A stretch of 64,000 nucleotides of DNA from assembly GCF_963853765.1 (NCBI RefSeq), contig NC_088861.1, positions 1,116,001 through 1,180,000 on the forward strand. The letters run 5' to 3'. This stretch comes from Magallana gigas (Eukaryota). The translations under genes were made by a program, and so were the position numbers. The notes under the pieces were generated by a model. It was not told where the DNA came from. It did no database searches and was given only the letters and a program-made list of their open reading frames with translations. The number at the start of each line of letters is the position of its first letter. Position 1 is the first letter of the stretch. Positions 127-52,046 of this stretch are shown piece by piece.

Positions 127-3100
127 CAAATGGGGGAAAATTGGGCATGCTGTAATAGCGACATTCCTCTCTTGCAGTTCATTGAATTTTCCTGGAAAGG
201 CCATGCAGAGAAGCTCGAGTTTATTCTCTAACGCTAAGGAGTCGCATGGAAGGCAGGTATATTGATCACAGGAAGGAAGGATTCGTGACCGACTAGGCTG
301 TTGACCTCTCGTTCACAGCACTCAGGGCAGATGGAAAGCTCATTCAGAGGCTGTGAAAAAAGCTCTGTATCGGCATTTCATCTCCACAAGTCGACAAAAG
401 GTCAGTTGTGGACAGGGGAATTTTGGGTCAAATCGCATTGATTTCTGTTCCCCCTAGGGACCTTAGAGGGGCGGACAAAGTGAGGACAATGAACTGAACT
501 ATGAACGCTTCTCCTCAAAGGCCCAAAATACCTAGATCTATAATCTGCAGTTGATGGTTTAATTTCATACAACTGCATGTATCCCTATTCATAACACCAG
601 CAGCTAGACGCTATTCATTGATATTTGAGTAGCTGTCTTGTCTGTCTATTTGAAAATGCAACTAATTCATAATGGGACGAGTAGGTGTTAACAAATGGGA
701 ATCAGAATTGTCTGAATGACTCAGAAACAAAGCATGTCTTCAACAACCAGTAAAATTACCTCTGGTTGTTTTATTATACCACGAGTTTTCAGGTAAAAAT
801 ACGGCAAGGCAATTAAGTCAACCATGAAAGGGAAATCACAGTCAACCGCACCGGGTGTTCACCACCAACAAAAACATCATCGTGGAACCAAAACCTGCCT
901 CGCAACAACAAACGTTTTAGACATCATAGTTCGATGACATGTAAGGAAAAAGGCGATTGAGGGAGCGAAAGAAGCGAAAGAGCCACGAGATGAAAAGATC
1001 CGGAAGATTACAGGGTTGCATGCAAATTTGAAGATAATTCATCAAAAAAAAAAAAAAAGTGAAAAGACTGTTGGAACGAGAGTGCTCGGGTTTGGCGAAC
1101 GGCTGATGACCGAGGAGCTAATCCACTAGCAATCGATGAAGTGAAAGACAGCCTCAACGAACAGGCAGTCATTCACACCATAAACCCTAGTTGATCCTTT
1201 GACATCTCTCTTTTTAAAGGTGTTGGGCGGATCAACCACGTGCATAAATGCACGTCATGCACACTTGAAAACATTTTTTGTAAATTTCACTGCTGATTGA
1301 GTTTCATTTTTCTTTTACAAAAACGGTACTCAAAATTCAAATCTAATGCAGTGACATTTCTGAACGATGTAAATTGAAATAAAGATAACCGAACATTCTT
1401 GCCCTGAAGTCTTGCTTCTGAGTTTAGAGAATTAATCATTCTAAGTGGTTTATATTCTATTTCTCTTATGACATGATGACGACTTTTAACCCCCCAAAAA
1501 GCGTAATAATTACATAAAACAATTTTGCCATACTATAGCATAATTTTTTTTTGTTATAACACCGCCATTAATTGCATTTATGCAACTTTTGGAAGTCGTT
1601 TCACGTTCTCAAACTCGTTCTCACTGTCTCGATTGCACTTTTCTCTACTGCCAGAATGATAAATTCTGTGAGTAATTGGGGGTTGCCTTAGTGTAGTTTT
1701 AGCAGTGCAAAAGAGAATTATGCTTTCAACACGATTGTCACTAAAATAGAAAGGAATCCACATTTCAAGGTGAAAGGCATTCGAATCACAGATGATGTGT
1801 CTATTTTCAGTCGGTACGGGAGCCTTCGGCTGTTGAAGTCCTTTTGGATGAGAGTCAAAAGACATACGTTCTTTCTGTGCTGCTATCGTTTATTGAATTA
1901 AAAATACTGTTTTCGAATATTTAGTAAATGTCTAAAAATATCCTGTTTTGATTGAATTGTGGTAAATTGTCGTCTATATTTGAGTGTTACGATGAGATTA
2001 AAGTTTACATATGGGATTGGTTCCCGAAATCTTACATACTTTATAATGAATCTAAAGAATATCCAACAATAGTTCTTCGCTCCTATTCGTAAAAATAGTC
2101 CTTTCTGATATGCCATATAGATTAGGGTTTTGGTAGGTTTGGTCGATACTCAGTTGATATTAGTATCTTATCAAACGCCGGATTTCAAAAATCTTGTATT
2201 TTTAACGCCTCCTTCTACTCACGTTTTCCTCTAGAATAAGTATGTGCTTATAATTCATTAAGAAGAAGAAACTTCTATCGCTTTCGAAATTTGGACTTTT
2301 CTGTGTTTCGACAACCATTACAGTTCAGAAGAGGAGACACCATCCCAGAAATCAAATACATATATTATTTAACATCTCTGCATTTATGCACACGCATAAC
2401 TCAGGTATAAAACGACCAGTACGGATGATTTTGCAACTTTGTAAACAATATTAAAATATTCTTTATTTAATTTGTTCAAGAACTCCCAACAGAAATGTGT
2501 GAAATATATGACGACCGGACATTCCTTGAAACATACAATTTTTTTTATGATTAGCAAATCATTATATTTTAGAATTTCTTACCTTCAACGAGTAAAATCA
2601 AGTAACTTATAGTACTAGATGCCGAAATTACGTTTGTCTGCAAAGAATAGGCAATTTTGGAGGAGAAAAAAATACGTTGAAAAACTAAAAAATACAGTTT
2701 TGTCTTCCACATTCTGAAAATAAATAATTTTAGATGCTTAACTTGTCAAATTCAAAAGATCCTCGCTTGCTTCAACCGAAGATGGCAAAGAGCGTAAATC
2801 GAAGTCTTACAAAATTAATATTGTACATCGTTGCACATGCAGATCCTATGTAGTTTTGACATTCTCTGATAGTCAAATAAAACACATGTCGGACTTCATT
2901 TTACAGTATTGCAAGCGAGATAACTCCGTATGGTCAGTCAAACAACTGATCCATGTATCTAAATATTACTGCCTATATAATATTATATTTGTTGCAAATG
3001 TTTCAAACTGAGTGTTTTATCATACACTAAATAAATACCAAATGAATAAGTACTTACAATATATGGTTCGTAATGAACAGATGAACGTTTGTTTTGGAAT

Positions 3101-42200: not shown

Positions 42201-44308
42201 TCTGTAGTAATTCAGTAACAAACCTAATAAGTGATAATATGCCCTTGAACTATAATATATCATTTTATTTTCTACATTTAATTTGTATGTATCATTTAAA
42301 ACAAAGCAAATTATATATGAGTTTGAGTATGGATTTATAATTAAAAAGCAGGTAGTGTTTTATTTGTTTCCTTTACGTTGATATAGAAATAACATCATGA
42401 GTTACTTCTCTTTGCTAGTTAATTCATAAGATCTTTAATTAATATGATTATATATCCTCAGATGTAGAAGAGTATTACCATCTTTGATTTGTGAAATTTT
42501 TAAAAATAATTTAACGATTTTTACAATTATAAGGTAAAAAAAAAAAGGTGGAGGCATAGATTTATTTGTTATTACCCAACCCTCTTTACATGGCTCTGTC
42601 GCGGTGATCATTTCTTAGTAAGCGTTTGGAAGTTCTGGGGTAAATATTCTATCACAAGCAAATACTGTCATACACAAACCTTAGAGGATATTTATAACTC
42701 AGCTCCATCTTCCCTTTTACATTTTGAGGATTTCAGTCAAAGCATTTAAATATAATGACTATTCGAGTCATTTAAATAAATAATTATTCATTTAGAGAGT
42801 TATCAATTGTATAGCAACATTAGCAAGTCACTTAATCAGGTAGCAAAATATGATTTCATCGCGATGGTTTGAAACCGAAACATGCTTTATCATACAGGTC
42901 TGATTTTGTCACAACTAGAACCCCTCCCCCAGCCTCTACCCCCTCTCAATTCTTATTAAACCCTGTTTCAGCCGTGCGTTTGATGTGAAACTCATTAAAT
43001 TCTATCGTGATGAGGTTATACTCGTTTCATTGAAGCCCAAACTGTGTATAATTATAAAGTTGCACTCCTCCGCGATTCTCTGGCATATGGCTAAAAGCTT
43101 GCCATTTTAACCTGGATATTACAGCAGAAGGTAGACTCCTGAAATAACCCAATGATAACCCTACTTTTATGTGACATTGCTGATGATATATACTAGTGGC
43201 CGAGAACACAAACAAAAAGCAACTCAATTGTTTCGTTTTTTAATTTCTGCAATTCAGTTTGTGAATTCTATATCTGAACAAAACAAATTAATTATTGTGA
43301 AAAAAATTTCCACTATATATTAAAATAACATGATGTTTTAAGAGGTATATATTCTAAAATATATGTAATGTCATGACAAAAAATAATACTAGTACACGAA
43401 ATAGTAGATGATAAATTTTACTGATCCTTTAAACATTATCAATTAGCCGGCTTAAAATAAAAGGTAACGGAATACGAATCAACATATTCATAAATGTACA
43501 TGTGTTACAATATTTATTTCTGAACTGCATATTTTTACTTTTAATATAAACTTTTCAATGCCAATCAAAATATAAGATATAAATGCAGTGATTTGTAGTC
43601 GATTTTTTCGAAGAGAATGTAACACATATCCTGCAGTCCAAGAAAAATTAAACATAAACAGATAGCAACAGGGTTAGTAAACATGACTTTTACAGAATGC
43701 CAGCGATGTCTTCATGGTGGTGATTCGGATCTCTTGTGGGAAGGACGGATTCTACCAACTACCTGATGCTTAAACTATCTGCTAGTGATTCACTACAAAT
43801 AATAAAAAGAAAGAAAATCACTAAAGAAGGTTATACTTGTGACAAGAAATACAAAGACAGAAAAGAAACAACTAGATTAAAGTGAAAAAAATTGAATGCA
43901 TGCAAGACAATTTTGTATTGCGTTGTGAATATACCTTTTCGAAAATTCTTAAATTTAAAGTTTGAAACGCGTGTAATTAGATATTCATATAATTGTTGCC
44001 TATGTCACAATGACACGCAATAATAATATACGGTACTATCAGTAAGATTTTTGAAAAAAAACTCAAGTTTTCGTTAGAAAGAAACGCAATTCATCTTAGT
44101 TGTATAAATTTACTGATTGTATAGATTGACTGAAAATTAAACTATATATTTAGTGATAAATTTGATAGCTACCAAATTCATACGAATATAAGTGTGTTGG
44201 AACAGTTAACATTTTGTTATAGACGCTATCGGTAGCTATCAGATTCATTCCTTAGATTGTGTAAAGGTTAAAAGTGCAGCATGAATTAAAGATCGTATTG
44301 CTAAAATA

Positions 44309-47300
44309 TCACAGATTATCGTATGCAGACAAAGGACGTACGTCGGACTTCTTTTCATCGTTTTGCTTTATCTCCCTTGATTTTGGTCTGGACTTCCGAC
44401 CTGATACTGCACGCTTTGGGGTTAATTTTGGAGTAGACTTTTCTTTGTCTGACTCCTTCTTTGTGGGACGGTCCTTTTTCTGGGGAGAAACAGTTGCCTT
44501 GGTTTGTTCACCCGATGCTGTCTCACTTTCGTCTTCCTTGTCGTGTTCAATTGACATGTACCTTTGTCGAATGTAAACAAACGGTTTTGCTTTCTGTGGT
44601 TTCGGAGAATCTTTTTCTGGATCAGGTTCCGTTTTTGGCAATTGTTTTGGTTCTCTTCCTGTCGTTTTGGGTAGGTTTTTTACAGGGTCAGGACACTTTT
44701 TCTTTTTTGAAAAAAGCTTCTGCATGAAACTAACATTCGAATTCGCTTTTTTCTCAGTTGGTGTAGGTTTCTTTTCCGAATTACCTTCCGCCTTCTCCTG
44801 CAACTTTTGAGGAGAAGAAGGCGTTCTATTCGGATCAATCTTTAGAGAGGAAAAGTCCATTTTTGCGTCAGTCGAAATATTTGAACTTTCTGATTGACAC
44901 GAAATTACTGACGCTGTTAATTCAGACTCTGTAGAGGAGGTCATTGAGGTATTCAAAAGCACATTTCCTTTCGGAAATTTAGGATTTAAAACGGGCGTTT
45001 TATCCAAAGAGGTATTGCTTCCTTTGTGGACAGGAATACGGCTTGGAGATTTTTGTTGGGAATGTTTGCTTTTATATTTCTGATTTGGCACTGTTGCAAT
45101 TTTTCCTGGAGCAGAATTAAATCTTGACATCTTATTTCCAGCATGGGGACTCCCAATAGGCAAGGTCATACTTTCGTTTCCATCACACGATGTCTTTGAT
45201 TTTTCTGCAGGTTCATCTGAAGGAGATAATGTTTTCCCCTTCAATGTAGTTATCGGTTGTGGTTTTCTGTCTCTTTTTTGTGTTTTCCCAGCACTAGTTG
45301 ACTGTGCTAATAATTGTTGTACATTTCTCTGTCGTCCTTGTTCAGAAGTATCCGGCTGTTCATTCAAATTTTCTTTTGAAGATAACTGGTCGTTTGAAGT
45401 TTTCCATGGCACATCGGGCATGTTTTTTTGAGTTGGACTTTGTAATCTCTCAGACACTTTTTGTAATTTTGAAATACACGCAGCCATTTTACCTTCCGCA
45501 AGTGTCGTTGAATCTGTTAAAGTGTTAGCATCTGTTACTTCTATTCTCGGTGTCATTGTAAACTTGTTTGCAGTATCTGGAATTGGTTTGTTACCGAAAA
45601 CATTTTCAGCAATTTGTCGAGAACTACTAAAAGTACTTGTAGCTTTATCAGATTTTGCAATGTAAAATGTCATTGTTCCCTTTGAAAACAGATGACGAAT
45701 CGGCGTTGATGTTTCCTTTTCAAACGTTAGTTTGGGTTGTGTATTGGTACATACATCGACTAACTCTTTGCCTTCCTTATCTTTACGTTTTGAGTGTTTC
45801 CACACTTCGGGTTCATTTGGATCATGATCTTGTGTTTGCGGAATAGTAGTTACGAATGTTTGGGTGGCTATTTCAGTATCTGATGTATAGTCCATTGATG
45901 TGTAATCATCCACCATTTCTATATGGTCTTCAAAATCGTGAATAGATGGTTCCGATGATACAAGATCGAAGGCAGATTCTGGTATGAGGAAAAGTTCGTC
46001 GCCTTCAAGTTCACTCAAAAGTCCGATGTAAGGCAGAGACTCGGTTGAGGTGGCCATATCACAACATTCGATCGGTCTTTGATCAAACTCGCGTGAAGTA
46101 CCTATTGATTTGTCAAAAAGGTTAACCATTGACGTTTGTGTTGAGATTTCTGTAAACGTCATCGAAGACTGGCCAAATGACATAGCCATTGTTCCACGTT
46201 CCTGAACATCTGGAGGTGAGGGATTTGTGGCCATATCCACCCTTTTCACAAAGTCCTCTAAACTAACATTTGTTGACTTATGCACTGGGGTTAATACTCG
46301 TCCACCATACACATCGTTCAACGAATTGCAATGCGAGAGAGTGTCCGATGTACCTATGCCTGCATCCGAAAACAGTTTAACGTCAGTGTTGGTTTCTTTG
46401 GTTTCGGTAACCATCTCAACGAATGTCTGGGCGTCTTGGCATTTCAATCTTTCTGTTAAAGTTTCATTATCCTGGACAATAATCGTTGTTTCTGTGGTTG
46501 AATCTTTAAATTTGACTATTTCTGTGTGTGTCGCTTGGTCCATCAAAACCACCGGGTTTGTTTCAACACACGAATCAATAGTTGCTGGTCGAGGAGGTGA
46601 TATACCTGTGTTGACAAGAACAGGATTAAAAGTTTCAGTCCATTGGTCAGTACTTGTCACCTTAGTGGTGCTTGTTTCTTTATCAGAAAATTGCAAAGAA
46701 CAGGTTTCTGTACTCGATTCTACCATAGTTGGGCTTAGAGGAGGAAGCATCTCGGTCAAACTCGATTGACTAGAGAGTTTGTCAATGGATCCGCGGCTAT
46801 CTGAAGATCCTTTTCCTTTAAATAGCTTTAGCAAACCCCCATGCCACGATTTTCTGTTTTCGCTCGACCCTGTCTGATTTGGTTCCCATTGGTCAGTTTG
46901 AATGCAAGAGCTGGCAACATTTGTAGGCATCGTGAAAGTGTTTACATCTCTTTGATTTGGTGTAACTTGAAGGCCCTGGTCTGTTACAGACACAGGTGTC
47001 ATTTCGGTGCCACTGTCTATCGTTTCACAACTAACAGTGAAAGTTGATCTTTCTGTAGTTGACGGTGGATCCGTCCAAGTCTCAGCGGTAGTAAATGAAA
47101 TTGTTGGCATAGACGTTTCACTATCCATAAAGTTGATTTTAACAGTTGATGTACCTTTGTCAGTCTGCCCTGCATAATCCGTTCCTACATTTTTCGTAAT
47201 TTGAGTTACTTTTGGTGTTTGTGTATCCGATGTTCTGCTTTCTACTTTGGTTTGTATTTCAGAATCTCGAGTTCGAACCTGATATGTACACGTAACGGCA

Positions 47301-49075
47301 TTTCGTGTTGGGACAACTGGCTTCATTTCCACAGTTGTCATAGTAGTCGTATCCCGTGTACTTTTCTTTGGTATTTTCTCCTCTATGGTTTCAAAGATGA
47401 TGGGATCAAGTGCAATTGTCTTGGTCTCTGGTTTGATTATCGGTACAGACCCACAAGAAAGACTTCTCTCAGGAATATTGCGCAGATTCGGAACAGAGAG
47501 GCTTAATTCGTCTACGCTCTCATTTGACATAGAAAGATCGGTTTGTACTCTCCTGCTTCGAATTAAGCTACGTCTCCTTCTTCGCCACTCTTTCGGATTT
47601 GACTCTGGTGCATCCAGTACAATAACATCTTGGACGCACGGAGCGGTGTTATAGTTCGAGGCTGCAATATTAACCTCAGACTGTAGATCTTGGCAGCACT
47701 TTATACAAATACCGGACCCTTTGCATCCGACATCTGAGAAAGTTTGCATGCAGGCGTCAACAGTCGGTATTGGAGTTTGGGATCGGAGACTAGCTTGTGA
47801 GTCTACCCTGTTGCCAAGGTAGTTTGCCACCTCTGACGTGTAACTGATTTCCATTTCCGAGACCACAGATCCTGATTCCGAATAGCTTTGAATACTGTTT
47901 TCTTTCGAGCTTTTAGTCCAATCGTCGCTGAAATAGTCGTCCGTTTGACATCCAAAGGAATTTTTCTGAAGGTTGATTGAATATTCTGAATTTTCATTTT
48001 CATCTGCATTTTCGTTAATGGTCAGCTTTCCAAATTTGACACCACCTGGAATAAACTTAATCTTGGTCGTAAAATTCATTACATCTTCGGGTAGATCTGG
48101 GAGAGTTGGCTGCATTAGAGACATTAATTTATTTTGCATCTCTTTCTTTAAGAGCAACATTTCTACCCCTTTGTCTCTCATAATGATATCTGTCAAGTTG
48201 CAAGCATTTTGAAGTCCATCCAAATTTTCTTGCAGCCAATCTTTATTTTCTAGAAAGGCCATGATATTCTCCCCAAAATACGAATCAACTTCTTTTAATA
48301 ATTCTTTTTCAGTACTTCGGACCTGTTGAATGTAGCTGATAGCTAAGTCCCGAATATTGTCTCTGGTCTCTTTTAATATTGTCTCGCACTGATTCATCAC
48401 GTTTATGCGTTCTTGGACAACATCAAATCTGCTTTTGCAGTTATTTAACAAGGACTCTAGGGAAGATTTATACTTTGAGTATCCTTCGCTGAATGAACAT
48501 ATTTCATGGTCTCGATGTTCTTGAAAAGTACACACAACACATATACAAGCATCGCAGGGCTCGCAGTAGAATCTAACAATTTCGTCGGGGTGGACCTTGC
48601 ACTCGATGTCTTTCTCGCCTTCAACGTCAATAAGGCTATGATGTTGAGTCACCTTTGTTGTCAAGTGCAAATCAACACACGCTTTGCACAACAACTTGGA
48701 ACAATCAAGACACTTGGAACAAGCATCGTTACTTCTTGGTCTAACGGTGTGACAAATCTCACAAGGTGGTATTTTCAATGGCTGCCGCCTGTCAATCACT
48801 TCCGTAAGGTTAGCCAACAGAAAGTTGTCAGGTAGACGTCTCACGCCACCTGTCGGTATTTCCGTCCGCTTGCGACAGAGAGGACATGTAACATGGCGGT
48901 TGTATAGGGAATACCGAGAGCGCGTGTTTTCCGAGTCCACGTGCTGTTGTATACAGTCGGTACAGAATGTGTGTAGACATGTCAGTGTTTTTGGACTTTT
49001 GTAGGGTTCCAAACATATTTTACAGTGTAGAAATTGGTCACTAATTTCTTGCATCAATTTATTGTTGGTCGCCAT
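44309..49075 (-). CDS. TRIM/RBCC E3 ubiquitin ligase (RING-HC, B-box1, B-box2, coiled coil) with a long Thr/Ser-rich disordered tail, ~1588 aa, single coding exon
   Basis: Uninterrupted ORF. First ATG at 49075 (MATNNKLMQEISDQFLHCKIC); the track's start at 49084 is a GTG. RING CKIC..CLHTFCTDC..CPLC; B-box1 CEIC..CLDC..LCKAC..H..H; B-box2 CKVH..FYCEPC..ICVVC..H..H; helical region to about residue 330. No NHL/filamin/SPRY domain recognised. Splice acceptor at 49092 just upstream. Confidence 0.93.
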   Translation of the reverse strand: MATNNKLMQEISDQFLHCKICLEPYKSPKTLTCLHTFCTDCIQQHVDSENTRSRYSLYNRHVTCPLCRKRTEIPTGGVRRLPDNFLLANLTEVIDRRQPLKIPPCEICHTVRPRSNDACSKCLDCSKLLCKACVDLHLTTKVTQHHSLIDVEGEKDIECKVHPDEIVRFYCEPCDACICVVCTFQEHRDHEICSFSEGYSKYKSSLESLLNNCKSRFDVVQERINVMNQCETILKETRDNIRDLAISYIQQVRSTEKELLKEVDSYFGENIMAFLENKDWLQENLDGLQNACNLTDIIMRDKGVEMLLLKKEMQNKLMSLMQPTLPDLPEDVMNFTTKIKFIPGGVKFGKLTINENADENENSEYSINLQKNSFGCQTDDYFSDDWTKSSKENSIQSYSESGSVVSEMEISYTSEVANYLGNRVDSQASLRSQTPIPTVDACMQTFSDVGCKGSGICIKCCQDLQSEVNIAASNYNTAPCVQDVIVLDAPESNPKEWRRRRRSLIRSRRVQTDLSMSNESVDELSLSVPNLRNIPERSLSCGSVPIIKPETKTIALDPIIFETIEEKIPKKSTRDTTTMTTVEMKPVVPTRNAVTCTYQVRTRDSEIQTKVESRTSDTQTPKVTQITKNVGTDYAGQTDKGTSTVKINFMDSETSMPTISFTTAETWTDPPSTTERSTFTVSCETIDSGTEMTPVSVTDQGLQVTPNQRDVNTFTMPTNVASSCIQTDQWEPNQTGSSENRKSWHGGLLKLFKGKGSSDSRGSIDKLSSQSSLTEMLPPLSPTMVESSTETCSLQFSDKETSTTKVTSTDQWTETFNPVLVNTGISPPRPATIDSCVETNPVVLMDQATHTEIVKFKDSTTETTIIVQDNETLTERLKCQDAQTFVEMVTETKETNTDVKLFSDAGIGTSDTLSHCNSLNDVYGGRVLTPVHKSTNVSLEDFVKRVDMATNPSPPDVQERGTMAMSFGQSSMTFTEISTQTSMVNLFDKSIGTSREFDQRPIECCDMATSTESLPYIGLLSELEGDELFLIPESAFDLVSSEPSIHDFEDHIEMVDDYTSMDYTSDTEIATQTFVTTIPQTQDHDPNEPEVWKHSKRKDKEGKELVDVCTNTQPKLTFEKETSTPIRHLFSKGTMTFYIAKSDKATSTFSSSRQIAENVFGNKPIPDTANKFTMTPRIEVTDANTLTDSTTLAEGKMAACISKLQKVSERLQSPTQKNMPDVPWKTSNDQLSSKENLNEQPDTSEQGRQRNVQQLLAQSTSAGKTQKRDRKPQPITTLKGKTLSPSDEPAEKSKTSCDGNESMTLPIGSPHAGNKMSRFNSAPGKIATVPNQKYKSKHSQQKSPSRIPVHKGSNTSLDKTPVLNPKFPKGNVLLNTSMTSSTESELTASVISCQSESSNISTDAKMDFSSLKIDPNRTPSSPQKLQEKAEGNSEKKPTPTEKKANSNVSFMQKLFSKKKKCPDPVKNLPKTTGREPKQLPKTEPDPEKDSPKPQKAKPFVYIRQRYMSIEHDKEDESETASGEQTKATVSPQKKDRPTKKESDKEKSTPKLTPKRAVSGRKSRPKSREIKQNDEKKSDVRPLSAYDNL

Positions 49076-52046
49076 GGCTTCCACAGATGTCCTACCAAGA
49101 ATATTACTCAGATATGATTATTTCAGTTAGCGTTTTGAACACTGAATTTGGCACATTTTTGCAGTTCAGTAGTATGGAGGATAGAAATATCATTGAATAT
49201 TTTCCATTTTCTGACGTCACAGATTACTGCTTCCAGCTGATTTATGATTGACTACAGTATTTTTTATTTGGTAGCATTGATAGAGATTGATCTTTTATCA
49301 TCTTACATCTTCCTATCAATTTAATAAGTCATATGGGCTCCAAAAACAGCTCAGATAAACCAAACAGCGGGGTCACCTCCAGTCATAGCATCTACAGAAA
49401 ATGCGTCATATCCACGGTTTCTGTTTCAACGTTATCATAGAACTCTATCTTTTTAAACTTTTTCAAAAAATAGTGATTGATGCTATTTTGAGGGTTCGTT
49501 CCTTGTCAATTCCAATTTCTAACGGATATGCATTCTATCAAACAGCATCAAACGTTTCCAAGATCCCTGCTGTATTTCATTCAGGCGCGTTCAGTTGTAA
49601 CTGCGGTAGAGGGTGTACGTTTTTGTAGTTTATGAGTTGGCGGGTCTTGCTATATAGCGTGTTTTTCTGTTTCCGTCATGTGAATGATGACTATCCTTTG
49701 GTACTGGTTATCAGTTGCTGTAACCTGGAAATAAAAACAAAAAGAACCTATAAAGTAAACTAAGTAGAATTATTTTAAAACCAAAGTCATTATTTAACCT
49801 CGTCTAATCAATCTGTCTGCGTGTTCATATAGCTACAAATAACCATCTTGAACCTTTATAAAAAGTGCTTTTAAATAACTAAATCATAATGTACAAACTT
49901 TCATTGAAATATTTACCTAATCAAAAATATATTATTCAAATGCCTAAATAAATAACGTTATACATTGCTATATGATGTGTATTTGATGGTTGCATAGTTT
50001 TATTATTTCATTTTAATTGATACTTTTATACATTAAACTATAGGTGTACAATTTTTGTAATTGATCAAACTTAAGCTGGGACTAATCGGATTAAATGCAC
50101 ACTTTCAAATACCGGTATTTGTAATACCTTCAATACATATCCTGCAATGCTTGCAATAAACTTAATACCCGAAACAACACAGAATTGTTTTTTGCCTAGT
50201 TAAAACGCAATATTGTAAATATCTACCAAACGTAAGAAATTTTAGGGAGCGCAGCTGATCTTAATTGCCCTCATCTGCGATTTATGCTTGTTCTATAAAG
50301 TTTGGGGTGTCAGAATATTTAAAACTCATCATGTTTAACCAAAGCTAACAAATCATCTAAAGTTATCACTTGATCTCTTGCCCTAGACTTACTTTTGATG
50401 TAAATTAGCCATGTAACGAAGAATTCGAGAAGATTCATGGCAAGGCAATCTGGTAGGCGTATGGCAAAGTTTGATAAAAAAAGAAGAAGCATTTCCCAAC
50501 ATCAAGCTTAAACTGAGTTAATTAAACAAGAAAACAAGATGAGGAAATTCGTTACGTTAATTTCAATTCACAATTTTTATCGTGTTACTGTTTTAACAAT
50601 ATTTATAAATCAGTTGTGCAACACTAAAAAACTCGTATGTATTTTTTTAAACTTCTGTAACCTTTTAAGCAGACACTGATTGGTCGTCTGTGCAGTAACA
50701 ATGAGCGATTACATACACGTGTTCGTAATGACAGAGAAAGATTCATTCATGATACAAAGATTCATCATACATCATGCTTATTTGTGATCTATTCTTAGAA
50801 TATTTATGTATTCTTAATTACCAAAGTCTCAGAGGAAATGGTGCATGTCAGTGTACATGTTAAGTTGGGTTAACATTGCCATTAATTTTTTTGAAAACTG
50901 CATTGAAATAAACTCAGTGTTCACGCCATGCTTTCACTTCTGTTGTAACTTTAGACAAGCCAGATACACAAACAAACCCATAAAATATGACTAATTAGAG
51001 GTGAGTTAAACTGTCTGTATATTTACAGGAACTTTGACTAGAACACTGTTTATAACCACAGGTATTGCCAGCCTGCCAGGTAGCAAGGGAACAAAAATAA
51101 GCAGATGTACAGGGGAGAGGAAAATGTTTTCCTCCCGTGTCGATAGATAGATCGCTGAGATACAGTCGATGTCGAGGAAGTGCTCGCGATAGGGTCTCAC
51201 CTGAAACGTTTTGATGAGAGATACAATGTCTTTATTAACATATGGTGTATCTATCCCATCGACATTGCCGAAGAATCCTGGTACCTTACTGTATCAATGC
51301 TTCCGAGAATCGAGATGTATTTTTTTTAATTTGCAGATATCTAAAATGATGAGAATATGTTATTGCGTTTTTGATAATGAAATTCCACAAGAAGAAAAAT
51401 ATATTTTTGTAAGACGTTATCTATATGATTGTACGCGTCTATCGCAGTCTAATTCTTGGTGAATCTCTTCGAATATATCCTCCTACACTCGTAGCACTTG
51501 AAGCATTGTACACGAATGTCGTAAAAACACATCTGAAGTGAAGGTCGTGCATTAATGTGTCTACATAATTCTTAATGCGCATGCCAACAGAAGTCATCAG
51601 ATGTTGAGTCATTCATTAGATGACGAATACAACAGACAGATGAATGGATTACAGCAATGGTGATATTTCCGGTGTCGATGCTTTTGAAATCGCGATTTTA
51701 TTTTGTTATGTTGTTAAATAAATTTAAATATATTCATTAATTTTTTCATGTAAAATAATCCTGTGATTATATTAAAATGGATACTAGAAATGCCGATGTT
51801 ATAGATGGTAACACATGAAAAAAAAATTAATCGAACACCTGCATGCATTTTCTTATTTTCTGCTAACGTTAAACCGATGTCCTATAAAAATAACGTAATA
51901 TCCAGATGCTGCAATGCTGAAACTGAGAATGACGAAAATCCAACCAAACTTTTATCTTTTCAAATGTCAATGGAGCATACAAGAGGGCATCTTTAGATTT
52001 TATCTTCTGTTCACAGTAATCTTAAAAAATGCACGTAACCTGACAA

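Follow-up and report, generated by a model that had tools for sequence, protein, structure and literature searches.

A 64,000-nucleotide stretch of the Magallana gigas genome (NC_088861.1, positions 1,116,001 to 1,180,000; hereafter the window) encodes on its minus strand a TRIM E3 ligase whose long disordered tail carries roughly 30 regularly spaced units of a 12-residue motif. The units resemble the binding motifs of the dynein light chain LC8 (DYNLL), and the protein probably belongs to a spiralian (mollusc, annelid, brachiopod) TRIM family that bears a multivalent LC8-type array. We infer LC8 as the partner and, with it, what the resulting assembly would do. Positions given below are those of the window. 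Residues are numbered along the single long minus-strand open reading frame (ORF; 44309-49084, 1591 codons) that holds the whole feature, and in whose translation every peptide quoted by the first-pass annotation of this DNA was found.

The periodic array in the tail

The repeat unit is 12 residues long and reads hydrophobic-D-K-x-T-x-T-[D/E/P], followed by a linker of 3-4 residues. When the middle residue of the T-x-T triplet is taken as position 0, a hydrophobic residue or Arg stands at -5, Asp at -4, Lys at -3, any residue at -2, Thr at both -1 and +1, and Asp, Glu or Pro at +2. Around the 28 T-x-T triplets of the tail, Asp at -4 is enriched 6-fold, Lys at -3 5.3-fold and Arg at -5 3.7-fold, while the +2 residue is Asp, Glu, Pro or Phe. 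Thr-Thr pairs at a lag of 12 residues are strongly over-represented in the oyster tail (z = +6.0) and in its relatives (3.0-9.3), in agreement with the recurrence of every 11-12 residues that had been noticed in the first-pass annotation. That annotation had taken xQT as the repeat unit; the dominant conserved core proved instead to be T-x-T with Asp at -4 and Lys at -3. The xQT sites that it quoted are all present, but two of them, GCQTD and CMQTF, are not positionally conserved, and within the 12-residue register a third, DAQTF, is better read as a T-F-V anchor.

In this register the motif-bearing tail of about 820 residues resolves into four blocks (residues 606-731, 800-913, 949-1015 and 1109-1191) with roughly 30 units in total, accompanied by isolated sites, two of which are listed here. 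The region and its parts are as follows, with bits referring to the LC8 matrix described below.

45512..47962, minus strand: whole motif-bearing disordered region, residues 375-1191 (all matrix matches of at least 3 bits; AlphaFold2 disorder)
47537..47560, minus strand: isolated site RSRRVQTD, residues 509-516 (8.7 bits; preceded by the basic patch WRRRRRSLIRSRR)
46892..47269, minus strand: block A, residues 606-731, ~11 units (anchors 611, 622, 634, 646, 658, 670, 682, 694, 706, 717, 729)
46346..46687, minus strand: block B, residues 800-913, ~10 units (anchors 805 to 911; includes DKETST, QDNETLTE, ETKETNTD)
46040..46240, minus strand: block C, residues 949-1015, 5-6 units (anchors 954, 966, 983, 995, 1013; includes TEISTQTS, CDMATSTE)
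45854..45877, minus strand: isolated site TEIATQTF, residues 1070-1077 (10.1 bits; Gln in 36/37 orthologues)
45512..45760, minus strand: block D, residues 1109-1191, 6-7 units (anchors 1114, 1126, 1138, 1150, 1177, 1189)

Spacing within the blocks is tightly held. Adjacent anchors of block A lie 11 or 12 residues apart in most orthologues, the gaps of block B (10-13 residues) have the same minimum and maximum across orthologues, and those of block D are exactly 12 residues in nearly all of them. The anchors are conserved likewise: TLT of block B is kept in 33 of 37 orthologues, and KETNTD of the same block matches the validated KIBRA motif DKETNTE; in block C the Gln of the TQT at 983 is found in 37/37 and the TST at 1013 in 36/37; and the block D anchors VNT, TCT/TST, TMT and TST are conserved in 73-97% of orthologues. 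At the isolated RSRRVQTD site the Gln is invariant (37/37) and the consensus is identical to the oyster sequence. The basic patch WRRRRRSLIRSRR (residues 499-512, 47549-47590, minus strand), which abuts this VQT site on its N-terminal side and is conserved as R.RRS.IRSRR, could be a signal resembling a nuclear localisation signal or part of an extended high-affinity LC8 site.

Enrichment was judged against composition-matched shuffles of residues 375-1192. QT dipeptides number 13 compared to 5.0 in the shuffles (P about 0.001) and TQT 3 compared to 0.7 (P 0.035), whereas D..T.T occurs 12 times compared to 1.2, a count reached in 0/2000 shuffles, and [DE]K.T[SQ]T 4 times compared to 0.02. For a graded measure, a log-odds matrix was built from 79 validated LC8-binding 8-mers (Table S4, Jespersen et al. 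2019, PMC6607443); because its background is the tail's own composition, Thr richness as such scores nothing. With the threshold for a strong site set at 5.6 bits, the 10th percentile of leave-one-out binder scores, residues 361-1200 contain 16 strong sites, compared to 1.0 in global shuffles and 0.98 when shuffling was confined to local 40-residue blocks. This answers the doubt, raised in the first-pass annotation itself, that the motifs might score no better than shuffled T-rich sequence. At a threshold of at least 3 bits the tail holds 28 sites against 3.4 in shuffles, and a matrix that ignores position 0 still finds 13 sites at the top threshold where 0.5 are expected. Matches are confined to residues 375-1191, the TRIM head and the 380-residue C-terminus being essentially free of them, and the boundaries first proposed for the region (45510-47960) are therefore right.

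The flanks of the anchors match LC8 preferences on their own. Around T.T anchors the mean LC8 flank score is 0.58, compared to -5.7 in shuffles. A flank-only matrix that contrasts binders with nonbinders, the latter being 32 TQT-containing 8-mers from the same Table S4 (PMC6607443), separated the two with a leave-one-out area under the curve of 0.77 and gave a median of 5.9 for the 34 periodic sites, compared to 5.05 for binders and -0.18 for nonbinders. Reversal of a sequence preserves composition, T-x-T triplets and periodicity and flips only the flanks; averaged over 41 family sequences, reversed tails yielded 3.1 sites and forward tails 16.0. The flanks thus follow LC8 grammar in the correct N-to-C direction. 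Together, the global shuffles, the local shuffles and the reversed-sequence control rule out chance or composition as the source of the sites.

The tail is predicted to be disordered, as the first-pass annotation had supposed. AlphaFold2, run on residues 361-1200 with an orthologue alignment, returned a mean predicted local distance difference test score (pLDDT) of 38.7, with no residue reaching 70, a few short helices and no strands; because the alignment is shallow (39 sequences), a novel fold could have been missed. The resulting picture, with 8-residue conserved islands set in variable Pro-rich spacers, is one that typifies short linear motifs rather than a folded repeat. Pfam found nothing after residue 340, tail included, and an ESM Atlas feature search with the tail gave no usable match.

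A word search with the tail retrieved 43 proteins, nearly all of them full-length with the same RING/B-box/coiled-coil (RBCC) head, at tail identities of 29-99%. The named ones come from bivalves, gastropods, a cephalopod and a chiton, with Saccostrea as the closest named orthologue (79%). Strong sites number 7-21 in each of these mollusc orthologues (43/43) and 12-21 in the full-length ones, compared to about 1 expected. About 20 sites are positionally conserved. Aligned, the tails show islands of conservation that coincide with the motifs, and almost every invariant column holds the Thr of position -1 or +1, with the Asp and Lys in addition. The residue at position 0 is fixed site by site, being Gln at 514, 622, 640, 706, 729, 983 and 1075; Met at 611, 911, 1138 and 1177; Asn at 582, 717 and 1114; Ser at 646, 1013 and 1150; Leu at 876; Gly at 805; Cys or Ser at 1126; Trp at 670; and Glu at 1189. 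Neighbouring anchors within a block stand 11-12 residues apart, often with the same minimum and maximum across all molluscs, and inter-block linkers measure from about 24 to 122 residues.

A profile search of 1.84 billion representatives matched only 62 proteins, among which the named animals outside the molluscs were the annelid Paralvinella and the brachiopod Lingula. Homologues from these two phyla contain 13-22 strong sites, compared to about 2 expected, and their lag-12 Thr z is 4.8-7.4; the commonest anchor residue in the annelid is Asn (TNT, as in the validated KIBRA motif DKETNTE). As both the array and its period recur in these relatives, they are a family trait of spiralian age, so that the conservation of motifs and spacing in other molluscs, which had been proposed as a check, extends beyond that phylum. 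A search for DNA tandem repeats in the exon found none. The array is therefore not a recent repeat expansion; it is ancient and made of individually conserved motifs. The labels that public annotation pipelines give the orthologues are 'mucin-like' or 'serine-rich adhesin', one gastropod copy is automatically named TRIM56, and the family is without functional annotation.

LC8 as probable partner and the alternatives

The textbook LC8 motif is given, in PMC3078936, as [D/S]-4 K-3 x-2 [T/V/I]-1 Q0 [T/V]+1 [D/E]+2. The tail agrees with it, and is enriched, at -4, -3, -1, +1 and +2, while Gln occupies position 0 in ~7 of ~32 units. The Thr residues at -1 and +1 are completely buried in LC8 complexes (Jespersen et al., PMC6607443), and anchors without Gln exist among validated binders: TNT in KIBRA and WWC2/3 (DKETNTE/D), TMT in myosin Va and TLT in MAG (PMC6607443). 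A 2025 paper (PMC12057147) reports LC8 anchors in which this residue is Asn, Met, Ser or even Gly. The oyster units ETKETNTD, QDNETLTE, SDKETSTT, CDMATSTE, FSKGTMTF and FDKSIGTS belong to anchor classes with such precedents. The oyster protein also shares the general features of LC8 clients, with a disordered region, motifs that stand as islands in divergent sequence, linkers of at least 3 residues, long enough for neighbouring motifs to be occupied at once judging by dASCIZ QT2,3 and KANK1, and, as in many clients, a dimerising coiled coil upstream of the array.

The closest parallel is the L2 region of KANK1, a disordered linker on which 15 LC8 dimers assemble via non-canonical anchors that are individually undetectable (10.1101/2025.07.16.665182). 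Its anchors are TST (TST or TNT across animals), IGC, VNT and VMA; linkers of 3-4 residues are reported as optimal for rigidification and cooperativity and give a hinged rod of ~53 nm; and the 2025-26 work on KANK1 proposes that arrays of numerous weak, non-canonical and evenly spaced motifs follow a general design missed by current predictors (10.1101/2025.07.16.665182). An 8-residue motif plus a linker of 3-4 residues equals the 11-12-residue period of the oyster tail, which shares with KANK1 L2 the anchor types, this period, the block-plus-hinge layout and, through the SxIP motif described below, a possible microtubule link. The two differ in that the oyster array has ~30 candidate units in four blocks compared to 15, and is mounted on a RING/B-box/coiled-coil head where KANK1 has KN, coiled-coil and ankyrin modules. 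Moreover, binding has been shown experimentally for KANK1 and is proposed for the oyster array. No homology between the oyster protein and KANK was seen, though no search aimed at it was made. ASCIZ/ATMIN, with 7-11 motifs, and Nup159 likewise carry LC8-type motifs in a disordered region, where they form in-register duplex ladders. Those arrays consist mostly of strong TQT motifs, with heterogeneous linkers in ASCIZ, while in the oyster Gln anchors are a minority and spacing is uniform; dASCIZ does have a TMT site, its QT2,3 linker is 3 residues long, and the linkers of Nup159 measure 4-5 residues. Nor is either protein an E3 ligase: ASCIZ is a transcription factor of the zinc-finger type, and Nup159 belongs to the nucleoporins.

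Several observations weigh against LC8 as the partner. A scan of the tail with the strict ELM-type pattern [^P].[KR].TQT, a check named in the first-pass annotation, returned 0 hits, TQT is present in 3 units only, and Gln, normally a requirement for LC8 to bind a single site, is missing from about three quarters of the units. A G.QV-type pattern matched the tail once, which is not significant. Among isolated peptides, those that deviate from the anchor do not bind, and Gln at position 0 is close to obligatory (Jespersen et al., PMC6607443). When the exclusion rules of the same authors were applied with Gln alone allowed at the anchor, 3 sites remained where 1.35 are expected (P 0.15), and wider anchor sets under these rules were only about 2-fold enriched. 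Several of the Gln sites, too, break a rule: RTSDTQTP and ASSCIQTD have a small residue at -3, and TEIATQTF has a hydrophobic one at +2. The conserved middle residues W, C, E, Y/H and F have no LC8 precedent. The matrix itself cannot separate binders from TQT-containing nonbinders, whose median is 5.7 bits. TRIM coiled coils are antiparallel, so that parallel, in-register zipping of the two tails is no more than plausible. Because the Gln-only filter is not significant, the claim depends on the matrix, flank, direction, spacing and conservation tests; at the level of sequence, the LC8 reading passes every test applied except that of the canonical Gln.

A further caution comes from bacteria. 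The tail profile matches Gram-positive LPXTG hyaluronate lyases (E 2e-26), which contain 18-23 tandem copies of a 12-residue repeat, SDSGTQTDNPST, each scoring as a canonical LC8 motif.

P0057 residues ~1165-1560 and P0067 residues ~800-1090: SDSGTQTDNPST repeats of metagenome family-8 polysaccharide (hyaluronate) lyases

These repeats have a 12-residue period in which a D-x-G-T-Q-T-D core is followed by a Pro-containing 4-residue linker. Unlike the oyster units, they are near-identical copies in a secreted bacterial enzyme without access to LC8; their likeness to the oyster array is compositional or convergent and does not reflect kinship. They probably form a wall-spanning stalk; mimicry of host LC8 motifs would be speculative. 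Since bacteria have no LC8, the LC8-like signature alone is not proof and can have other causes.

One alternative would be a true multivalent array that is read not by LC8 but by another extended-strand binder, for example Tctex/DYNLT, a further dynein light chain in the same fold class, or some undescribed hub of spiralians that recognises D-K-x-T-x-T whatever the middle residue. The scarcity of Gln speaks for it, as does the fact that other sites each keep a middle residue of their own (W, C, S, G, E or Y), the failure of the Gln-only rule filter to reach significance, and the fact that the two Thr, the Asp at -4 and the Lys at -3 are what is most conserved. We consider it unlikely, as the flanks, their direction and the preference for D/E/P at +2 match LC8 specifically, TST, TNT, TMT, TLT and IGx are documented LC8 anchors in a multivalent context, and we know of no other hub with a D-K-x-T-x-T grammar. 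Alternatively, the 12-residue T-x-T units could act without any partner, as an extended semi-rigid spacer or by self-association into a beta solenoid-like structure or a cross-beta ladder between the chains of the dimer. A strict period with invariant spacing does resemble a structural repeat, T-x-T ladders on 12-residue coils occur in beetle antifreeze beta-helices, and the bacterial lyases use their SDSGTQTDNPST repeat as an apparent stalk without LC8. Yet AlphaFold2 found neither fold nor strands in the tail, within the depth of the alignment noted above; no conserved hydrophobic-core or Cys pattern links the anchors, Pro, Asp and Lys are frequent in the linkers, and the units are individually distinct and conserved per site instead of being homogenised. 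A partner-free role is in our estimation quite unlikely.

Finally, the conserved Thr could be modification sites, with clustered phosphorylation or O-GlcNAc tuning the disordered tail and the likeness to LC8 motifs being coincidental. Thr and Ser abound in the region, T-x-T-[D/E] conforms to the acidophilic phosphorylation pattern S/T-x-x-D/E, with many units having Asp or Glu three residues after the first Thr, and the 'mucin-like' and 'serine-rich adhesin' labels of orthologues point the same way. However, Ser almost never substitutes for the invariant Thr, which would be unusual for kinase sites; the strict 12-residue spacing, the preference for Asp at -4 and Lys at -3 and the directionality are left unexplained; and phosphorylation could regulate LC8 binding instead of replacing it. 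We therefore judge this explanation to be very unlikely. Mucin-type glycosylation in particular is improbable because the protein starts with a cytosolic-type RING and has no evident signal peptide. It was set aside together with an SPOP-binding motif and a Keap1 ETGE-type motif, as each of these readings would suit single sites at most or the wrong cellular compartment.

Gene structure, TRIM head and C-terminal region

The protein begins at the Met of ORF residue 4, the position at which orthologues start (MAT..). Stranded polyA RNA-seq reads from the same species cover 44342-49698 without a break, in minus-strand orientation and with no internal splice. At 44342 the reads depart from the genome, at a splice donor (GAC|GTACGT on the minus strand), and resume at 43792 with TGA; the loose read end maps to 43763-43792, placing the stop codon at 43790-43792 in the next exon. 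The intron after 44342 is thus 549 bases long, and the exon ending at 43792 supplies the stop immediately. From this junction it follows that the protein runs from Met4 to Asp1581 (1578 aa) and that the last ten ORF codons are intronic.

44342..49075, minus strand: TRIM gene coding exon, Met (ORF residue 4) to Asp1581, 1578 aa (from the ORF, orthologue starts and RNA reads)
48875..49024, minus strand: RING finger, residues 21-70 (Pfam zf-C3HC4, E 9.6e-10, 38.6 bits, cut-off 21)
48494..48772, minus strand: B-box1 (~residues 105-150) and B-box2 (159-197) (Pfam and MID1 structure alignment)
48065..48487, minus strand: coiled-coil region, ~residues 200-340 (alignment to TRIM28 RBCC; strong orthologue conservation)

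Protein predictions that reach the ORF's own stop, such as the 1588-aa P0001, include 10 intronic residues. The reads also show an additional splice junction near 49698, in the 5' untranslated region, and in two of three RNA runs an in-frame 3-base insertion (GAG) after 44808. Between 44348 and 49649 they differ from the window at ~40 single bases, which as far as checked introduce no stops; such differences are consistent with the high allelic diversity of oysters.

The identity of the head as TRIM, claimed from the outset, is confirmed by both Pfam and structure matches. The best matches of the RING in the Protein Data Bank (PDB) are the RINGs of TRIM3, TRIM2 and TRIM56. Pfam zf-B_box matches residues 159-197 (E 3.7e-08, 33.8 bits, cut-off 24.1), the tandem B-box structure of MID1 (2jun) aligns over residues 105-197, and in the annelid and brachiopod homologues an ANCHR-like_BBOX match, below Pfam's cut-off, falls at the position of B-box1. 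The TRIM28 RBCC structures 6qaj and 6h3a align over residues 13-317, and the first 357 residues match the TRIM3 RBCC structure with E 2e-29. These RING, B-box and RBCC matches establish a TRIM protein with RING, B-box1, B-box2 and coiled coil in canonical order, the same order as in TRIM3, TRIM2, TRIM28 and TRIM56, whose solved heads are the closest.

On the whole protein Pfam recognises only the RING and the B-box, and neither Pfam nor, for residues 361-1200, AlphaFold2 finds a class-defining globular C-terminal domain (NHL, filamin, PRY-SPRY, COS-FN3, PHD-bromo and the like). A disordered tail of >1200 residues with a periodic motif array takes the place of such a domain. The absence of such a domain does not bar TRIM membership, because TRIM classes without one exist; the protein fits none of the domain-defined classes.

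Downstream of the array, and also within it, lie further conserved segments.

44342..45487, minus strand: basic Ser/Lys/Pro-rich C-terminal region, residues 1200-1581 (a single matrix match of at least 5.6 bits)
45032-45043, minus strand: SxIP motif, SRIP, residues 1348-1351 (context SPSRIPV, residues 1346-1352; from the alignment)
Residues ~1202-1218, minus strand: CISKL..VSERL.SPT, conserved block without LC8 character
Residues ~1272-1282, minus strand: RK.QPITTLK, conserved block without LC8 character
Residues ~1321-1333, minus strand: RYNSAPGRIATVP, conserved block without LC8 character
Residues ~1452-1463, minus strand: GFMQKLFSKKKK, conserved block without LC8 character
Residues ~1501-1512, minus strand: PFVY.RQR..SI, conserved block without LC8 character

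SxIP motifs are defined as [ST]-x-[IL]-P in a basic, Ser/Pro-rich, acid-poor stretch. The consensus at the oyster site is SKIP (SPSKIPV in most molluscs), and it lies within just such a stretch. It is conserved in oysters, a pearl oyster, scallops, Solemya, a unionid, gastropods, octopus and a chiton, is lost in venerid and mactrid clams, and is not consistently present in annelid, brachiopod and further relatives. The motif looks like an EB1-binding signal for microtubule plus-end tracking, and may couple the protein to microtubule plus ends, a site of action known for KANK1 and similar LC8 clients.

Nowhere is the tail more strongly conserved than at residues 1008-1045 (45950-46063, minus strand), with the consensus D.ATSTESLPYIGLLSE.D.DELILVPE.AFDL. 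In this segment the TST unit comes first and an acidic/hydrophobic stretch follows, for which AlphaFold2 gave weak helical hints only. The block is a possible second binding module, and its YIGL resembles an Atg8-interaction core.

A putative LC8-zipped E3 ligase

If LC8 is the partner, the coiled coil would pair two chains, and LC8 dimers would bind the same unit on both of them, zipping each block into a close-packed rod of beads on two strings, with the variable linkers between blocks serving as hinges. Weak, mostly non-Gln sites joined by uniform short linkers would make occupancy cooperative and dependent on the level of LC8, as for KANK1 L2. The E3 would in this way have its reach, rigidity or oligomeric state determined. 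The result could be an extended spacer that separates the E3 head from the basic C-terminus, or an LC8-gated higher-order RING assembly. In its fullest version, which we put forward only tentatively, the tail would hold 25-32 beads in four hinged blocks, form a rod of ~100 nm (at roughly 3.5 nm per bead, as in KANK1) and let LC8 concentration cooperatively set the shape, reach or activity of the ligase, making this the most multivalent LC8 client and the first such E3. A literature search for a TRIM, or any E3, with an LC8 array found nothing relevant.

Multivalent LC8 assemblies are an active topic: work on ASCIZ has addressed concentration sensing, and work on Nup159 and KANK1 structural rods. 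Should LC8 bind, the oyster protein would exceed all LC8-zipped scaffolds described so far in size, and no earlier one sits on an E3 ligase. It would provide an independent natural example of the KANK1-type design, ~500 million years old, with about twice the units, a spacing that is conserved to the residue, and a catalytic E3 head to which the array is fused. In the fullest version above, the site-specific conservation of non-Gln anchors would represent a tuned affinity code for all-or-none assembly. The family would offer a rich set of conserved non-Gln anchors for retraining LC8 predictors. Should LC8 fail to bind, the strict period and the site-by-site conservation of these 12-residue motifs in a disordered tail would still have to be explained. 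The family also offers a test of whether LC8 gates higher-order TRIM assembly, and a functional lead for a conserved protein that databases label 'mucin-like' or 'uncharacterized'.

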